Positions 6,298 through 36,842 of a DNA stretch of 64,000 nt are shown piece after piece (within the stretch, counting starts at the first letter, position 1; every line of letters begins with the position of its first letter). The position numbers were made by a program, and so were the translations under genes. Location of the stretch: the NCBI RefSeq assembly GCF_036321535.1, contig NC_087451.1:19158001-19222000 (forward strand). The letters run 5' to 3'. Under the pieces are notes generated by a model, which was given only the letters and a program-made list of their open reading frames with translations, was not told the origin of the DNA and made no database searches. The DNA is from Camelus dromedarius (lineage: Eukaryota).

Positions 6298-6510
6298 NNN
6301 NNNNNNNNNNNNNNNNNNNNNNNNNNNNNNNNNNNNNNNNNNNNNNNNNNNNNNNNNNNNNNNNNNNNNNNNNNNNNNNNNNNNNNNNNNNNNNNNNNNN
6401 NNNNNNNNNNNNNNNNNNNNNNNNNNNNNNNNNNNNNNNNNNNNNNNNNNNNNNNNNNNNNNNNNNNNNNNNNNNNNNNNNNNNNNNNNNNNNNNNNNNN
6501 NNNNNNNNNN
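6298..6510. other. Assembly gap (213 N) in the FXR2 3'UTR
   Basis: N run seen directly. Confidence 0.99.
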
Positions 6511-13773: not shown

Positions 13774-13937
13774 NNNNNNNNNNNNNNNNNNNNNNNNNNN
13801 NNNNNNNNNNNNNNNNNNNNNNNNNNNNNNNNNNNNNNNNNNNNNNNNNNNNNNNNNNNNNNNNNNNNNNNNNNNNNNNNNNNNNNNNNNNNNNNNNNNN
13901 NNNNNNNNNNNNNNNNNNNNNNNNNNNNNNNNNNNNN
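13774..13937 (-). other. FXR2: Assembly gap (164 N) inferred to contain FXR2 exon 2 (53 nt)
   Basis: Exon 2 (GFVKDVHEDSVTIFFEN) is found nowhere else between exon 3 and the promoter. On the minus strand a pyrimidine tract (tcactttct) runs into the gap. Confidence 0.8.
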
Positions 13938-19305: not shown

Positions 19306-19741
19306 NNNNNNNNNNNNNNNNNNNNNNNNNNNNNNNNNNNNNNNNNNNNNNNNNNNNNNNNNNNNNNNNNNNNNNNNNNNNNNNNNNNNNNNNNNNNNNN
19401 NNNNNNNNNNNNNNNNNNNNNNNNNNNNNNNNNNNNNNNNNNNNNNNNNNNNNCGGGNNNNNNNNNNNNNNNNNNNNNNNNNNNNNNNNNNNNNNNNNNN
19501 NNNNNNNNNNNNNNNNNNNNNNNNNNNNNNNNNNNNNNNNNNNNNNNNNNNNNNNNNNNNNNNNNNNNNNNNNNNNNNNNNNNNNNNNNNNNNNNNNNNN
19601 NNNNNNNNNNNNNNNNNNNNNNNNNNNNNNNNNNNNNNNNNNNNNNNNNNNNNNNNNNNNNNNNNNNNNNNNNNNNNNNNNNNNNNNNNNNNNNNNNNNN
19701 NNNNNNNNNNNNNNNNNNNNNNNNNNNNNNNNNNNNNNNNN
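19306..19741 (-). other. FXR2: Assembly gap (436 nt, N except a 4-nt cggg island at 19454-19457) inferred to contain the FXR2 5'UTR and coding exon 1
   Basis: The minus-strand flank GCAGTAGGCGGTGGCGGCAG resembles the start of the FXR2 mRNA; GC-rich sequence on both sides. Confidence 0.85.
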
Positions 19742-24623: not shown

Positions 24624-24948
24624 CCTGCTCCATCTGTTGAGTCCGTGGGCTAGCCTCAGTCATGGATTCTGCACAGCCCAGTCCACACACTGTACGCCTT
24701 TGTCTGGGTCCCAAACGTGACCTACAAGCCTGATGTGAAAGATGGCCCCTTGCTCTTCTTTTCTCTATATTCTACAGGCCAGAGCCAAGACTCTGGTCCA
24801 TTGAGAGCGAAAGTCATCTTAGGCCCACCTTTACCCCCAGGAGCAACATCCACTGACCAGAACACTGAGGAAGGGTTGTAAAGTGGCTGAAGCTTATCAC
24901 ATGCTCAATCTCTCCTCCCAACACCACATCAGCACATAGGAATTCTCA

Positions 24949-24954
24949 TTTATT
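24949..24954 (-). terminator. SAT2 polyadenylation signal AATAAA
   Basis: tttatt on +, about 200 nt after the SAT2 stop. Confidence 0.75.
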
Positions 24955-25148
24955 TTTCACCCTTAACAAGAAGGTGGGAAGGCCTTTTCCATGCTTCTGC
25001 TCTTTCCATTTGGGAATATTCACCCCCAATCCTCCTTCCTTCAGGAAGGCCTTTGTCGGTGGAGACTATCTCTGGGGTGATAGTCTCTAAGGAGTGCTTG
25101 AGCTGGTGGGCATGGAGAAGCTGAGATAGAGATTCTCAAGGGATGGGA

Positions 25149-26462
<1,314 letters not shown>

Positions 26463-26850
26463 CCCGATCCCCACCGTCTGAGACTGAAGTCCAGGGCCCT
26501 CACTTCCGTTCTGCAGGATCGAGCAAAGAGCAACTGGGACCCTTTAAGGGGCCTACAAATTCGGATCGCGGAAAGCCGCGGGAGCTGGGGGAGCGAGGCT
26601 GTGGGGACGCCGCGAGCTGGGAAGCCGAAGCCCAATTCCGGCTACTGCGGGGCCGAGAAAGTGGTCGGGCGAGTGCGCTTCATAGCCCAGTAGCCCCTAA
26701 ATTCTGCCTCCGCCGGCGCTCAACCACCAGCCAATCAGCTTGCAGAGCAGGCATGTCCCCGCCCCCCGGTCCTACCCATCGAGGCCCGGTCTCGTGACCG
26801 CGCCCCTGGTCAGGGGTCAAGGCTGGACTGCCGAGGCTTCCTCGCTGTTG
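26463..26850 (-). promoter_or_regulatory. SAT2 5'UTR and CpG promoter
   Basis: CpG-dense; CCAAT at 26731-26735; GC box cccgcccc at 26758-26765. Confidence 0.65.
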
Positions 26851-27244
26851 TTACGTGGGTGTTCCAGCCTCCACTGGAGAAATCCCACGGCCCAAAGACA
26901 CCTCCTTCTTTAACTGAAGTGTGCAGTGATTACCTGCTCTACCCTTCACTCAAACTCACCCATTCCAGCCCACCCAGACCCTGGATGAGCCCCAAGACCT
27001 CCAGCTCATTCCTACTGGCTCAAAGTGTTACTTCTCTTGTATTTTAAATGGGTCGGGGGAGAGGGTGATGAATTTCTATTGGTAAATTGCTAGGCCTTGT
27101 CATAAACAATTAAGAGGAGATAACCGGGAGTTGGGAGGGGCGGGTTTCTTAGTATCTACTGACTGTCACTCAGAGACAATACCTCCCTATGAGAAAAGCC
27201 TCAGAGGCCTGGGAAAATACTGCGAGAGGAGCTCAGAGCAGATA

Positions 27245-27410
27245 CCAGGCACCATGCCTGCATTATCTCGATTCATCCTCATTCACAGAAACCCCATAAA
27301 GTAGGTATTATTTTTCAAGTTTTACAGACAAGGACACTAAAGCACACTGGGGGGTGACTTGCCCACAGTCACTCAGCTAGTATTTGGGATTCTGAGTCTC
27401 AGCTGTAGGC
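27245..27410 (-). mobile_element. MIR SINE
   Basis: Reverse MIR core (cattatctc...gtaggtattatt...ttttacagacaaggacact...gacttgcccacagtcac). Confidence 0.7.
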
Positions 27411-27631
27411 CTCGCGGAGGATGCTACTTGGGGAGCCCAGCAGGACTGTTCCTGTTGGTAGATCTCTTGATTGTCATCAAGGCAGCCTCCGCAGGTGGGC
27501 AGAAGGCTTGGAAGACACAGGTCAGGCTCTAGAGGAAGGGAAGAGGGAAGTCCTCTCCCAGCTCATAACTTTCTCAGCAGTGGGGGAGGGTAGTGGAGGA
27601 ACTCTGTCCCTTTCTCCATTTGTCCTCAGAG

Positions 27632-27700
27632 GGGCCAAAGGGTCAGTGGCCCTGTCTCCTGCCTTCCTTCTTACCCCTGAGGCAACCTTTAACCCTCCAC
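27632..27700 (+). promoter_or_regulatory. SHBG proximal promoter nuclear-receptor elements (HNF4A/COUP-TF-type FP3 and FP1 homologues)
   Basis: GGGCCAAAGGGTCA 27632-27645; CAACCTTTAACCC 27683-27695 (reverse GGGTTA-A-AGGTTG, a DR1) in the TATA-less position recalled from human SHBG. Confidence 0.65.
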
Positions 27701-27777
27701 CAACCATGTGTGAGGCTGCCTGCCCCCATGCTTTCTCCCCAGAGCTGTCTGAGGCACAGAGAGGACCAAGGCTGATA

Positions 27778-30617
27778 ATGGAGAGCAGAGGTCCACTGGC
27801 CACATGGCATGGGCTGCTGCTGCTGCTGCCGCTGATGCCTCCTAGCCACGCAGGAAGGGCCCTGAGACACACTGTCCCCAGCCAGGTGCAGGGGCAGGAC
27901 AGGGTGCTCAGCCCCATCTGTGTTTAAATGAGCTACTCTTTGGCTCTGCCCTGTTCCTTTCTTTCCTCCCCTGGCCTTGTAGCAGTGCCTCTCCTTCCCT
28001 CCCTCTGTCTCCGGCATGTCCTTATTTCAGCTTGTTTGTTTTCTATCTCTGACAGAGGACTCAGGACCCTCCTGCTCTACACCTCAGCAATGGCCCAGGA
28101 CAAGAGCCTGTCACCATAATGACCTTCAACCTCACCAAGATCACAAAGTATGGGGTTGACCTAATTCCTTGACCTAGTCCCCTGACCTCACCCTCTCTCC
28201 ATCATCTCCTTTCTTTTCCATTTCTCCCTGCCCTTCTCTCTCCCTGAAGTCCACCTCCCTCAACCTCACATCTACCATCAAAGGGCACACCCCATACCCA
28301 GTCCTTCTGTGTCCTTCCAGAACCTCCTCTTCCTATGAGTTTCGCACCTGGGATCCAGAGGGAGTGATTTTTTATGGTGATACCAACCCAAAGGATGACT
28401 GGTTTGTGCTGGGACTTTGGGATGGCAGGCCTGAGGTCCAGCTTCACAATCACTGGGCCCAGCTTACAGTGGTCACCGGACCCTGGCTGGATGATGGGAG
28501 GTGGCACCAGGTAAGCCAGATCTAGTCCTGAGAGAGGGGTGTCTTGAGCTGGTCTGCGGAAGGGAACAGAACCAAGTTACTGGGTATCCTTTTACCATTG
28601 TCATCTCATTGAATCCACATAAAAGCCCCAAGGAGCTGCTATTCTTGTCCCCATTTTTTTCAAAGAGGAATTCTGAGGCTTAGTATGTAAGTGACAAGTC
28701 CCAAGTGAGCTAGTGATGTTAGCTGACTCGTCAAGTACGTGTTCTTTCTGCCATACAAAGCTGCCTCTGAAGAAAGTGGTGAAGGCAGGCCTCAGGGGTC
28801 CTGGTTCTGCTTCTCTTTTCCTTCCTGCAGTTAGAAGTGAAGATCCATGGAGACTCTGTGCTGCTGGGGTGGATGGGGAGGAGGTGCTGCCTGCGTCTGA
28901 GACAGGTCTCTGGGCCTCTGGCCAACAAACCCCAGCCCATCATGAGGATTGCGGTGGGGAGGCTGTTGTTCCCTGCCTCCAACCTCTGGTTACCGGTAAC
29001 TGCATCACAGGGGTAACCAAAGCTGGTAAAGCTCTGCTGGCAGGGTGGCCATGGGGGTCTAAGTCCACACTTCACGGAGAGGGGATGGGGTGAGTGCTGC
29101 ATGGGGGGAGGCCAAATACTTGTGTCTTGGAGGGGAATAAGCTGAGGGTGGAGAGGCTGGGACTAGGGCTCAGATGTCCTGATTCCAGCATCCCCACATC
29201 TTCCCTTTCCCCCATGGGCTCCAACTGGTCCCTGCCCTGGATGGCTGCCTGCGCCAGCATGACTGGCTGGACCAACAGGCCCAGAGCTCAGCATCTGTCC
29301 CCACTGGCCTCAGAAGCTGCTCCGTAGAGTCCCAACCTGGGATATTCTTCCCTCCAGGGACTGGTGCAGAACGCAGTCTTCAAGGTAAAGGCCATCTTTC
29401 TCTCCATGACCAGCTTGTGTCCATTTCCCTCCACCACTAGCCTCTTCCGTCCACAAATACCCAACCTTGAGACCTCAGGAAGATCATTTCTCCCCCACCC
29501 CCAGACATTCCCCAGCCTCATGTAGAGCCCTGGGCCTTCTCCCTGGACCTGGGACTCCAGCTAGCAGCAGGCTCAGGCCCTCTCCTTGCCATTGGGACCC
29601 CAGAAAACCCTACTCGGCTCAGCCTTCACCTCCAAGATCAAGTAAGAGAGGGATGCTTCCTGTATATGCTGGAGCCTGGAAGCAATGGGAGAAAAGGGGA
29701 CTCCAAGAAGTCAGTACTAGGAAAGCTTAAGGGTAGGGGTTGGGGGATGGGGGGCCTGCAGAGACACATGTTGAAGCTGCCTACACCAAGCAAATGGCTT
29801 TTACTTAAGATTGTATATTTACTTGGGACTTGGGGTGGGTGTGGTTTTATAGAAGGCCAAGCCAGGAGAATGGAGGCAGGATCGAGGTGGTGGGAATGGC
29901 CAGTAATTAGACTGTGTGGCTAAGAGGCAGAATTGAGGCAGCCAGAGTGGGACCACAAGGTTCACTCTTTCCTTCCCAACTTGTGTCCCTTCCAATATAC
30001 TCTGCATAAGGTGGTACTGTCTTCTGGGTCGGGGCCAGGGCTGGACCTGCCCCTGGTCTTGGGACTCCCTCTTCAGCTGAATCTGACTGTGTCCAGGGTG
30101 GTTTTGAGCCAGGGGCCAAAGAAGGAGATGCTTACTCTGCCTCCTGTGGGTCCTGGCTCCCTCTTCAACCTTTGGGCCCAGCTGCAGGGGCATCTCTTCC
30201 TGGGGGCTTTGCCAGGTAAGAAAGTGATGTCCACGTTTCTCAGCACACCACTGGAAACAGCTAAGGGGAGGGGAGAAGATGGGAAGGGGTGCATTTTTAG
30301 GGGAAGGAAACCTCTGGGAGGGAAGAGGAAAAGGCTACAAGAAGAGAGAGGGTAAGCGGGCAGTGGGAGGAAATGCGTTCAAAAATTTAGGTTGGAGAAC
30401 TGGAAAAGCAGGGAGGAGCTTCTGGATCCAAGCCACCCTAATGTCCCCTCAATGCTACCTCCCTCTAGGAGAGGCCTCTTCTGCCTCCTTTTGCTTGGAT
30501 GGCCTTTGGGCACAAGGCCAGAGGCTGGACATGGACCGGGCCTTGAGCAGAAACCAGGACATCTGGACTCACAGCTGTCCTCAGAGCCCAAGCAATGGCA
30601 CTGACACCACCTATTAA
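27778..30617 (+). CDS. SHBG: Sex hormone-binding globulin, 8 exons, with lesions (possible incipient pseudogene or remodelled protein)
   Basis: Exons 27778-27885, 28056-28147, 28321-28510, 28831-28995, 29225-29384, 29505-29641, 30008-30215, 30469-30617(TAA). Laminin-G motifs [21 protein letters not shown] and HSCPQSP are present. Acceptors of exons 5 and 7 are non-AG, and exon 4 has a compensated frameshift. Confidence 0.93.
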
Positions 30618-30618
30618 A
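30613..30618 (+). terminator. SHBG ATTAAA polyadenylation signal overlapping the stop codon
   Basis: TAT TAA A; no other hexamer nearby. Confidence 0.55.
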
Positions 30619-30649
30619 TCCCTACCTAAGAACCCCCTTTGAACATCAC

Positions 30650-32290
30650 TCATTCATTTATTCAACAAATATTTACTGTGCATCTGTAATGTACCAGGTG
30701 CTGTGCCAAGCACTGGGTTATACTGATGAGCGACATTAACTCTGCTTCCTGCCCTCTTGGTGCTCACGGTCCCCTGGGGGAGGCAGGCATCCATCAAAGC
30801 CTAACAAGTGAGTGGATAATTGGAAACTCTGATAAGCATCATAAAGGAGCAGTCAGGGAGCTGAGAGAGCTTGGAGGCCAGCTGCCTTGACCTGGGTTGG
30901 GGGGGAGTCAAGGAGGGCTTTCTGAGGAAGTGATGATAGCACCCACAGATACATACACCCCCACCTCCTTCCCCAGCAGCTACTCCTTTGGGACTTTAGC
31001 TTCCTCCCTCTGAGGCTGGTCCCCAGAAACCAGGAGGGAAGGGAAGAAGAGATGGGATTTTGTTGTCCTTTAGACTAGCCACTGCTATGCGAGAAAGCAG
31101 CAGCAGGGGGCGTGAGTGGGTCATAGAACGATGAGGGCAGGGGTTCTGGGAAAAGGGGTGGAGGCAGCAGGGAGAAAATAAAAGGGAGGAGAGCAGAGGG
31201 AGAAAGCTGCCTGTCTCTCCTAGCCTCGGTGTACTTGCTGTGTTCCCACAGGAATTTGTCTTTACTCCATTAAACAAGAATTGGCTTGTGCTAGTCCCAG
31301 CTGGAAAGGACAGATTCAGGAATATCTCTGCCCTCAAAGAATATATGGTGACCCAGCCCTCGGCTCCCAGACCTCTGCAGAATCCTGGTGCCCCAGCTCC
31401 TCCCTGGGGCACCCTTTTGCCCCAGCCCTCAGCTCCCTGGGAAACTTCATGCCCAACCCCCCAACCCCTAGCTCCCAGCTCTCAGCCCTCTTGCAAATCC
31501 TTACATCCTAGCCCGAAGCTCCCAGCCCCCTAGGGAACTCCAGCCGTCAGTCCCCACCTCTCAGTCCTCATCCCTCTTAGGAACTGTTAACCTAGCCCCC
31601 ATCTCCAGACCCCATGGGGATCCTAGTGTCCCAGCTTCCCAGGTGATGAGGATCTTCCTACCAGTAACCCAGGCAACAGGGTGAGTCACTCACTGGACCT
31701 TCTGTCCCCTTGTTGCAGGGATCAGCCAGGACCTAAATGGCTCCAGGGTAAGGAGACTTCCAGAGAGTCTCTGGGTTGGAAGACACAAATCCTAGGCCCC
31801 TCCTTGGACCCTCTTGATCTCAAGTTTGCAAGATCTATAGCTGCCTCCATCCAGTCAGAGTGTTTTGCAGGAAAGTCTTCAGCATGGCGAGGGAGCCCCA
31901 ATTCAACTCTGGTCCCTGGGCAATGTTCAAGGTCAGCCTGGGCCACTTGGACATGTCCATTCAACTGACATTTCCTGAGCACCTACTGTGTACCAGGCAC
32001 TGTTCTAGACACAGAGAATGCATTGATGAAAAGGATAGACACAATCCCTGCCCCTATGAAGCAAGCTCACAATATAAGGGAGGCAATGGCCAGACAGCTC
32101 ATAAACAAAAATAAATAAGCAAGGCCATTTCCGATAGTGGGCATCTCCAGAAAGGGAACAGAATCCTATAGTAGAAGCAAGGGTGGTAGGGGAGGAGTGA
32201 CATTAGCCAAGTGGTCAGGGAAGGCCTCCCTGAGTCAGTGTCACTTGAGCAGAGACCTGAATAATGAAAAGAAACCAGTCCTATGGGGCC
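30650..32290 (-). mobile_element. LINE-2 fragments (about 30650-30930 and 31955-32290)
   Basis: tcattcatttattcaacaaatatttactg...gtgccaagcactggg and cattcaactgacatttcctgagcacctactgtgtaccaggcactg, the reverse complement of L2 3' ends; unique sequence lies between them. Confidence 0.7.
31100..31113 (+). promoter_or_regulatory. Candidate CTCF site downstream of SHBG
   Basis: GCAGCAGGGGGCGT, 12/14 to CCAGCAGGGGGCGC. Confidence 0.45.
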
Positions 32291-32766
32291 TCGGGTATTG
32301 GCTAGTGGGGAGAGAGGTTAAAGGGCCTCAACACACCTGGGATCGCACCAAGGGGGTTGTTCTGCGTTGTAACTTCCTGGCCTTGAGGAATCTCCCAGGG
32401 GCTAGCTTTTCTCTCCTTCCTCCACTCCATCCTGTCCAGGACACCGTGCCCCCAACCTCTCTTTCTCCAGCCTGCCCTAGATTCCAGGATTCCTGATTAC
32501 CATCCAGAGCTGTCTACACTCTTTCATTAAGGCCCACCCCCCAACCCTGCTTTGACACAGACTCTGCCAGGACCCACCAAGGGCACCTACGATGCCTGCC
32601 CAGTGTCCTGTGCCTCCCCCACACCCCTGAAACCTTTCCAGAGCTTGGCACCATATGCTGCAGCCTTCAGGCCTGGTCTGCCCACTCACTCTACCCAATG
32701 TATTATCACTCTCTTCCCTTCCCCCACCTTCCCTTCCTCTCCACCCCCCTCTACTCCTTTCTCTCC

Positions 32767-32916
32767 TTTCTTTTCTTTTTTTCTTTTTTTCTTTTTTTTA
32801 GTGGGGGAGGTAATTAGGTTTGTTTGTTTGTTTATTTTTGATGGAGGTACAGGGGATTGAACCCAGGACGTCATGCATGCTAAGCAGGCACTCTGCCACT
32901 GAGTCATACCCTCCCC
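32767..32916 (-). mobile_element. Camelid-type SINE with T-rich (antisense A) tail
   Basis: gtgggggaggtaattaggttt...ggtacaggggattgaacccagg...ccactgagtcataccctcccc. Confidence 0.9.
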
Positions 32917-33481
32917 TCTCTTTTCCTTTCTTTCAGCTAACATTTATTGGCTCCTGACAGTATGCCAAGCACTATGTTAGGTAGTCCACGGGGACTCCAG
33001 GGATGAGCTAGAGTTGGTCCTGGCCCTGGAGAACCAGGGTCTAGGGAGAGAGACACATAAAATGCATTAATAGGGATCTCTAGGAAGTGCCAGGAACTTG
33101 AACAAATAATTAACATCTTTAACATTCAGTTTCCCCAGCTACAAAATGGGCCAGTTACCCTACTCATAGGATTACTGGGTTTGGTGAAATCATGTATCAA
33201 ATGCCTAGCATGGTGCTCGGCATATAAAAAGCGCCCAGTATATGAGGGATGTTACTCTTGTTGATATCATTAGCCTTGTGCAGAGTTCCTGAAATATGTC
33301 TGAGCCTGCCACATACAGAAGATAAGGAAGGGTGTGTGATGTGTCTGAAGCAGGGACAGGCTGAGATAGAATGAGGGCAGACTGGGGAGGCTCCTTCAGC
33401 CATGGGCTCAGAGGTCTTATATGTCCTGTTGCGGAGTTGGGGCTTGATCTGGTCAGCAGAGGAACATCTGTGTTTCTTTCC

Positions 33482-33618
33482 TTTTTTTTTAAATTGTAGT
33501 AAAAGACACATAACATAATCTTAACCATTTTTAAGTGTCCAGTTTGGTGGCATTAAGCTTCACAGTGTTGTAAAATCATCACCACTGTCCATCTTCAGAA
33601 CTCTTCATCTTGTAAAAC
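33482..33618 (-). mobile_element. L1 3'-end fragment
   Basis: ttttttaaattgtagtaaaagacacataacat...aaccatttttaagtgt is the reverse complement of an L1MA/MB 3' terminus. Confidence 0.7.
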
Positions 33619-36702: not shown

Positions 36703-36842
36703 NNNNNNNNNNNNNNNNNNNNNNNNNNNNNNNNNNNNNNNNNNNNNNNNNNNNNNNNNNNNNNNNNNNNNNNNNNNNNNNNNNNNNNNNNNNNNNNNNN
36801 NNNNNNNNNNNNNNNNNNNNNNNNNNNNNNNNNNNNNNNNNN
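36703..36842 (+). other. ATP1B2: Assembly gap (140 N) inferred to contain the ATP1B2 start codon and coding exon 1 (112 nt)
   Basis: Left flank is the GC-rich end of the 5'UTR. Gap size fits 112 nt plus margins, and MVIQKEKKSCGQ is absent elsewhere. Confidence 0.85.

Follow-up and report, generated by a model that had tools for sequence, protein, structure and literature searches.

A compensated −1/+4 frameshift and altered splice acceptors in the SHBG gene of camelids

A stretch of 64,000 nucleotides (nt) from the dromedary genome (Camelus dromedarius, assembly GCF_036321535.1, contig NC_087451.1, positions 19,158,001 to 19,222,000 of the forward strand; hereafter the window) carries the gene for SHBG, a secreted steroid carrier. 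Eight exons were mapped on the forward strand (Table 1), and their spliced translation is identical to XP_010994818.1 (P0032), which is annotated as SHBG isoform X1 from C. dromedarius. This agrees with the gene assignment, and with the attribution to a camelid, in an earlier annotation that had been made from the letters alone (the sequence-only reading). The dromedary protein is 75-84% identical to SHBG from whale, bat, and bovid species, and its N-terminal domain is recognized by the Pfam profiles PF00054 (86 bits, cut-off 24) and PF02210 (36.7 bits). Judged by these similarities, the locus is the SHBG orthologue with its two tandem laminin G-like domains. We describe here a pair of compensating indels in exon 4 of this gene, which is common to camelids, and further lesions which affect its splice acceptors.

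Exon 4 is delimited by cag/TTAGAAG at 28831 and by TTACCG/gtaac at 28995 (slashes mark exon boundaries). It matches residues 103-156 of human SHBG with an E-value of 7e-15 and a one-residue insertion (PDB sequence search). In the critical region, the window reads ctgctggggtggatggggaggaggtgctgcctgcgtctg, with four G at 28866-28869 and with ctgc at 28887-28890 and again at 28891-28894, exactly as described in the sequence-only reading. The orthologous loci from Vicugna pacos (alpaca), C. ferus, C. bactrianus, minke whale, oryx, arctic fox, greater horseshoe bat, and common dolphin were used for comparison. Minke whale and oryx have one base more at the G run and a single CTGC. Between the two indels, all 21 bases match those of the whale (21/21, DNA alignment A1), and the peptide VDGEEV is still readable from camel DNA in the +2 frame, as had been noticed before. 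The net change (−1 and +4, thus +3) results in an exon 4 of 165 nt in camel, as compared to 162 nt in whale, oryx, horseshoe bat, and dolphin, which bears out the predicted difference in length. Exon 4 from arctic fox (L006:2040-2204) is also 165 nt long, having acquired a separate in-frame insertion of 3 nt further downstream (GPPATNKPQ). Because the fox exon reached this length independently, exon length alone does not mark the camelid event.

Table 1. Features of the SHBG gene in the window. Positions are those of the window; lower case letters are intronic and slashes mark exon boundaries.
Feature	Position	Strand	Remarks
SHBG coding span	27778..30617	+	spliced coding sequence corresponds to XP_010994818.1
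SHBG exons	27778-27885, 28056-28147, 28321-28510, 28831-28995, 29225-29384, 29505-29641, 30011-30215, 30469-30617	+	
SHBG exon 4, 165 nt	28831..28995	+	codes for residues 103-156 (human numbering) and one additional residue
G4 run, site of 1-nt deletion (G5 in whale)	28866..28869	+	alignment A1; in window, C. ferus, C. bactrianus, V. pacos
Seven shifted-frame codons TGG ATG GGG AGG AGG TGC TGC (W-M-G-R-R-C-C)	28870..28890	+	replacing V-D-G-E-E-V
CTGC-CTGC tandem duplication (+4), restores frame	28887..28894	+	alignment A1; in all four camelids, absent from whale and oryx
Exon-5 acceptor, AA instead of AG	29223..29224	+	ccaa/ in four camelids; ccag/ in whale, oryx, fox, bat, dolphin
Exon-7 acceptor, cag changed to cat, next AG (30009-30010) used	30005..30010	+	ctgcataag/GTG in four camelids; ctgcag/AAG GTG or ctgcag/AAA GTG in five outgroups
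Stretch of exon 1 deleted in alpaca (signal-peptide core), intact in window	27808..27839	+	alignment A2; blastn break; exon-1 length 76 vs 108
TGG (W) at human position 72	28418..28420	+	Camelus-specific; Arg in alpaca and five outgroups
Arg to Trp at position 94	28484-28486	+	Camelus-specific
TGG at position 154 (R154W)	28987-28989	+	common to all camelids

Homopolymer runs and short repeats are prone to errors, and an assembly or sequencing artefact in this G-rich stretch might be suspected. Against this stands that the assemblies of all four camelid species, which come from different projects, carry the same indel pair, and that the two changes compensate exactly. As the indels are identical in four independent assemblies of four species, chance and sequencing error are excluded, and we consider the probability of an artefact to be negligible. 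The distribution of the pair indicates that it predates the split between camel and alpaca and is an ancient fixed change. Both indels belong to common types of slippage events, namely contraction of a homopolymer and tandem duplication of 4 nt. An exact-motif scan of metagenome contigs did not reveal extra camelid SHBG copies, and protein searches did not return a transcript-derived SHBG protein from camelids, only predicted RefSeq models.

In human numbering, the effective rewrite comprises V116W, D117M, E119R, E120R, and V121C plus one extra Cys, with G118 being kept. This corresponds to the peptide GWMGRRCC with two cysteines added just before Leu122, as originally proposed. With respect to the comparison peptide, which had been given as EVDGEEV, the core VDGEEV is correct; the leading E is that of human SHBG, with whale and bat reading G-V-D-G-E-E-V (GGG GTG GAT) and position 115 being variable among mammals (W, G, S, R, E, K). 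Three acidic residues are indeed lost, and two of these are replaced by Arg; the third is replaced by Met and not, as had been stated, by a basic or aromatic residue. The affected columns are well conserved among 68 full-length mammalian SHBGs from non-camelids, which show V (63/66), D (64), G (55), E or K, E (60), one of V, M, I, and L, and finally L. The same residues were looked for in other mammals: neither the camelid peptide nor any insertion at this place was found in these 68 proteins (0/68), and the peptide was also found in none of the library representatives.

According to a model of low confidence, the rewritten residues are those of the conserved V-D-G hairpin which precedes strand beta10, together with the first residue of beta10. 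The initial description as rewrite of a strand thus holds for this one residue, the change being mainly located in the hairpin turn between two strands. Leu122 and Leu124, which follow, presumably have a role in the SHBG dimer. Zn site III, close to the dimer interface, has Asp117 among its ligands (PMC8804615), which supports the proximity to this interface that had been proposed, and the disordered lid loop is located between beta10 and beta11 (PMC10687090). In camelids, W-M-G takes the place of V-D-G, and Asp117 is lost. The Pfam profile Laminin_G_1 scores 86 bits for the N-terminal domain from camel, as compared to 107-113 bits in whale, oryx, and bat (21-27 bits lower), and the match to Laminin_G_2 ends exactly at the rewritten segment.

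The underlying AlphaFold2 model was restricted to the N-terminal domain (92 sequences) and has a predicted local distance difference test score (pLDDT) of 57 and a predicted template modelling score (pTM) of 0.58. It superposes on 1LHO with a template modelling (TM) score of 0.77 by target (Foldseek) and has a strand, a five-residue loop (M-G-R-R-C), and a further strand at the rewritten place. The structure prediction that had been suggested thus recovered the hairpin and the SHBG fold at low confidence; the model was used solely to place the hairpin, after Foldseek had confirmed the fold, and has no bearing on stability. A full-length AlphaFold2 model (47 orthologues, mean pLDDT 40) was discarded. 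By an accident of the G-rich sequence, the new frame keeps the turn glycine (Gly118), and hydrophobic and charged residues alternate in it as before; this may explain why the change was tolerated.

Beyond exon 4, two of the seven SHBG acceptors are altered in camelids, which thus do not retain the canonical set of GT-AG introns. The exon-5 acceptor has AA instead of AG in all camelids, which is the loss of an essential splice site, one of the criteria for a unitary pseudogene. An acceptor changed from AG to AA is rarely usable at a constitutive exon. In-frame AGs are found close by, at 29187-29188 (adding 36 nt), 29256-29257 (removing 33 nt), and 29277-29278 (removing 54 nt). The last of these is used in the RefSeq models X2 from dromedary (P0131) and X1 from alpaca (P0102), at the cost of 18 residues which include Cys164, Ala160, and Leu171, the latter presumably being a steroid contact. 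Cys164 forms a disulfide with Cys188, and Ala160 is a residue of the Ca site (PMC8804615). At exon 7, the shift of the acceptor has turned the conserved Lys codon AAG into intronic sequence, and this Lys is missing from the protein alignment. Users of RefSeq should be aware that camel SHBG is annotated as an ordinary protein-coding gene and that one isoform model crosses a non-AG acceptor.

There is no uncompensated frameshift and no premature stop in SHBG from the window, C. ferus, and C. bactrianus; exon 1 from alpaca is the only case. There, 32 nt are deleted within the CTG-repeat core of the signal peptide (L001:3692-3767), which shifts the frame. The current RefSeq models for alpaca SHBG begin at an internal Met in exon 2.

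Several replacements add to this picture. All camelids have G145R in addition to R154W, and several radical replacements are found in their C-terminal domain; in Camelus, R100W (precursor numbering) breaks a column which is conserved in at least 97% of the sequences. When ranked among 68 for departures at conserved columns, camel takes 3rd place at a threshold of at least 97%, 5th at 90%, and 11th at 80%. Such departures are elevated in camel, not extreme, and they do not settle the question of function. R154W and other unusual replacements are also found in dolphin, where exon 8 (L008:5264-5411) is shorter by 1 nt, with loss of the usual stop and a short C-terminal extension (TTI(T/K)SPPKNLL); the same holds for Lipotes (P0142). 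SHBG from toothed whales may also be under relaxed constraint.

Some further observations concern the locus and its annotation. The locus from C. ferus is colinear with positions 24775-33617 of the window (99.5% identity, blastn). In camelid loci, a gene for a SAT2-type acetyltransferase (Acetyltransf_1) is located 1.3-2.6 kb upstream on the minus strand, opposite to SHBG. Runs of N (6298-6510, 13774-13937, 19306-19453, 19458-19741, and 36703-36842; 949 bases in total) do not occur within SHBG. The RefSeq model from C. bactrianus (P0134, 425 residues) starts at an upstream in-frame ATG (27706-27777 in the window) and has 24 additional residues ahead of the usual Met. A similar N-terminal extension is found in the oryx model, and the upstream start in C. 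bactrianus is probably an annotation choice. RefSeq also predicts isoforms of 286 residues (P0135, P0136, P0137), which use an out-of-frame ATG in exon 3 (28374-28514) and splice from within exon 3 to an AG within exon 4 (28885 onward), at the duplicated CTGC (LQW/CCLRLRQ). Similar SHBG models of 285-294 residues have been predicted for many mammals. The sole pig protein among the matches listed (P0158, Sus scrofa, 182 residues) is an "uncharacterized protein" which reads through intron 4 and exons 5-6 into intron 6; full-length SHBG from pig is absent among the matches listed.

Selection was analyzed by branch-specific estimates of omega, the ratio of nonsynonymous to synonymous rates (GY94/F3x4, pruning likelihood), with the seven shifted codons masked; the implementation reproduces the log-likelihood (lnL) and omega from IQ-TREE. 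IQ-TREE arrives at 0.476 for the nine taxa together; the four camelids by themselves give 0.64, and non-camelids 0.43-0.46. Under the one-ratio model, omega is 0.474 (lnL −3927.217). When background and camelid clade are separated, the values are 0.458 and 0.545, respectively (lnL −3927.033), which is not a significant difference (p = 0.54), and an omega of 1 for the clade (lnL −3930.299) is rejected (p = 0.011). A model with background, stem, and crown gives 0.465, 0.509, and 0.618 (lnL −3926.960). For the stem, a value of 1 (lnL −3929.415) is rejected (p = 0.027). For the crown, a value of 1 (lnL −3927.774) is compatible with the data (p = 0.20), and so is the background value of 0.46. Exons 2-8 carry 16 nonsynonymous and 11 synonymous changes for the crown; differences within Camelus amount to 7 nonsynonymous and 1 synonymous. 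Camel and alpaca diverge by 2.0% in exons 2-8 and by 2.1% in introns, where a single indel was counted over 1634 nt. SHBG is weakly constrained in all lineages compared. Along most of the camelid stem, the gene was under constraint, and the period since the lesions is too short to separate constraint from neutrality. For a crown of this depth, neutral decay would be expected to leave about this pattern, with the frame intact in one lineage and shifted in the other.

The values for the stem bear on the possibility that SHBG was already dead when the indels occurred, and that the second indel restored the frame of a pseudogene by chance. Several lesions are found on the same branch, and the indels are of the commonest slippage types, both of which speak for this possibility. 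An omega of 0.51, significantly below 1, speaks against it, and so does the fact that the stem is devoid of stop codons and of other uncompensated indels. Furthermore, the −1 deletion alone would meet a TGA ten codons downstream, which leaves about 30 nt for a repair, and the second indel also had to be of suitable length. A frame-restoring indel within this permissive window has a chance of a few percent at most over the whole stem, which is a rough estimate from the single intron indel event (1 per 1634 nt per 2.1% divergence). We thus consider it improbable that the gene was dead before the indels. Because chance repair is improbable, the repair was most likely selected, so that SHBG still mattered at that time; the stem omega below 1 indicates constraint over most of the stem, and this fits with a selected repair.

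On balance, we favor a scenario in which the SHBG frame was first repaired under selection, while the classical carrier function was relaxed or lost afterwards. Before camel and alpaca diverged, one G was lost from the G5 run and CTGC was duplicated 21 nt away in exon 4. Either indel alone shifts the frame; together they restore it, converting V-D-G-E-E-V to W-M-G-R-R-C-C within the N-terminal domain, which binds steroid and dimerizes. The pair was most likely fixed by selection for an open frame at that time. Later or about simultaneously, the exon-5 acceptor would have lost its AG and the exon-7 acceptor would have been shifted. With AA at exon 5, use of a cryptic AG is predicted, and the downstream choices would delete 11-18 residues, including Cys164 and Ala160 (and Leu171 when 18 are lost). 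The gene would now be drifting, with its frame open in Camelus and broken in exon 1 of alpaca. It is considerably more difficult to square the AA acceptor with an N-terminal domain of normal structure, and the frameshift in alpaca points in the same direction. The 7 nonsynonymous as against 1 synonymous differences within Camelus, the similar divergence of exons and introns between camel and alpaca, the crown omega, the decreased Pfam score, and the rank of camel for departures at conserved columns also speak for this scenario. The secreted steroid carrier in its classical form is most likely impaired in camelids, or lost.

A number of observations weigh against this scenario and would rather be expected if camelid SHBG were still a working secreted steroid carrier, or had a modified role, with a remodeled hairpin that is tolerated or adaptive. 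Each lesion which is shared by the camelids preserves the frame, and the 401-codon frame is intact in the three Camelus species. The omega of the camelid clade is below 1 and equals that of the background, as detailed above. Residues of the steroid contact, the Ca site, and the disulfide outside the hairpin are conserved in camel. Gly118 and the hydrophobic/charged pattern are retained, and the low-confidence domain model is still an SHBG-like sandwich with a hairpin at that place. The acceptor changes might be bypassed by rare use of AA or by the upstream in-frame AG at exon 5, which would add 12 residues and delete none. Finally, the alpaca deletion is from a single assembly and lies within a CTG repeat. 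A working protein would then have a reversed charge at the hairpin, lack Zn site III, and carry vicinal cysteines (Cys-Cys) beside the dimer strand. Against a working SHBG stand the AA acceptor, which is seldom usable and for which the annotated alternative deletes Cys164, Ala160, and Leu171, and radical replacements at conserved positions (G145R, R154W, F>R, and W>R, with R72W and R94W in Camelus). The exon-1 frameshift in alpaca, a crown omega which is not distinguishable from 1, and the decreased Pfam score argue in the same direction. We thus consider a working or modified SHBG rather unlikely, while it is to be taken seriously. The rewrite described in the sequence-only reading is real but not isolated: with two shared splice-acceptor lesions in the same gene, functional remodeling is one of two live readings.

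It is slightly more doubtful that camelid SHBG is still made and secreted with an altered hairpin that changes dimerization or steroid handling, for example as a disulfide-linked or metal-independent dimer. If true, a hormone carrier would have gained a new working surface from a natural frameshift, and selection acting on the downstream part of the protein would account for four lesions in succession that preserve the frame. Together with the shared splice-acceptor lesions, the indel pair raises the question whether camelids lack functional plasma SHBG. If they do, this bears on the interpretation of free testosterone and oestradiol in camel and alpaca reproduction. The rewritten hairpin is the best conserved in a hormone-binding domain of known structure, which makes the effect of the rewrite directly testable.

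The camel domain is orthologous to the N-terminal laminin G-like domain of human SHBG, for which several structures are available (PDB 1D2S, 1KDK, 1LHN, 6PYA, and others). In comparison to the human protein, residues 116-121 are replaced in camel by a shifted-frame peptide which is longer by one residue. Camel SHBG lacks Asp117, has two additional Cys, and is encoded by a gene with damaged exon-5 and exon-7 acceptors. We did not find relevant literature on SHBG from camel, dromedary, or alpaca; predicted RefSeq proteins which contain the rewritten peptide are publicly available.

Pairs of compensatory frameshifting mutations have been described as a class before, and a genome-wide screen in vertebrates retained five high-confidence cases which occur in multiple species (PMC8935012). 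Such multi-species cases are rare. As in these pairs, camelid SHBG has two nearby indels with a length that is not a multiple of three, with the frame being regained after about 20-30 nt, in several species. The spacing resembles that in RASSF4 (26 nt) and NCR3LG1 (32 nt) from that study, which does not mention SHBG (0 occurrences). That screen was restricted to indels of 1-2 nt, whereas the camelid −1/+4 pair is outside this range. The camelid pair also differs from the reported cases by being located in a strongly conserved structural motif and by being accompanied by splice-site lesions. Camelid SHBG is a well-supported new case of a multi-species compensated frameshift, and its physiological implication is testable.

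Shbga is reported to be conserved throughout the vertebrates with the exception of birds (bioRxiv 10.1101/2020.07.02.184432), and its loss in birds is a precedent for a vertebrate lineage that lives without SHBG. While the gene is absent in birds, camelids have kept the locus, the gene order, and a full open frame. Because locus and open frame remain, any loss in camelids would be recent, partial, or only functional. If SHBG has been lost in camelids, a mammalian case would be added to the precedent from birds.

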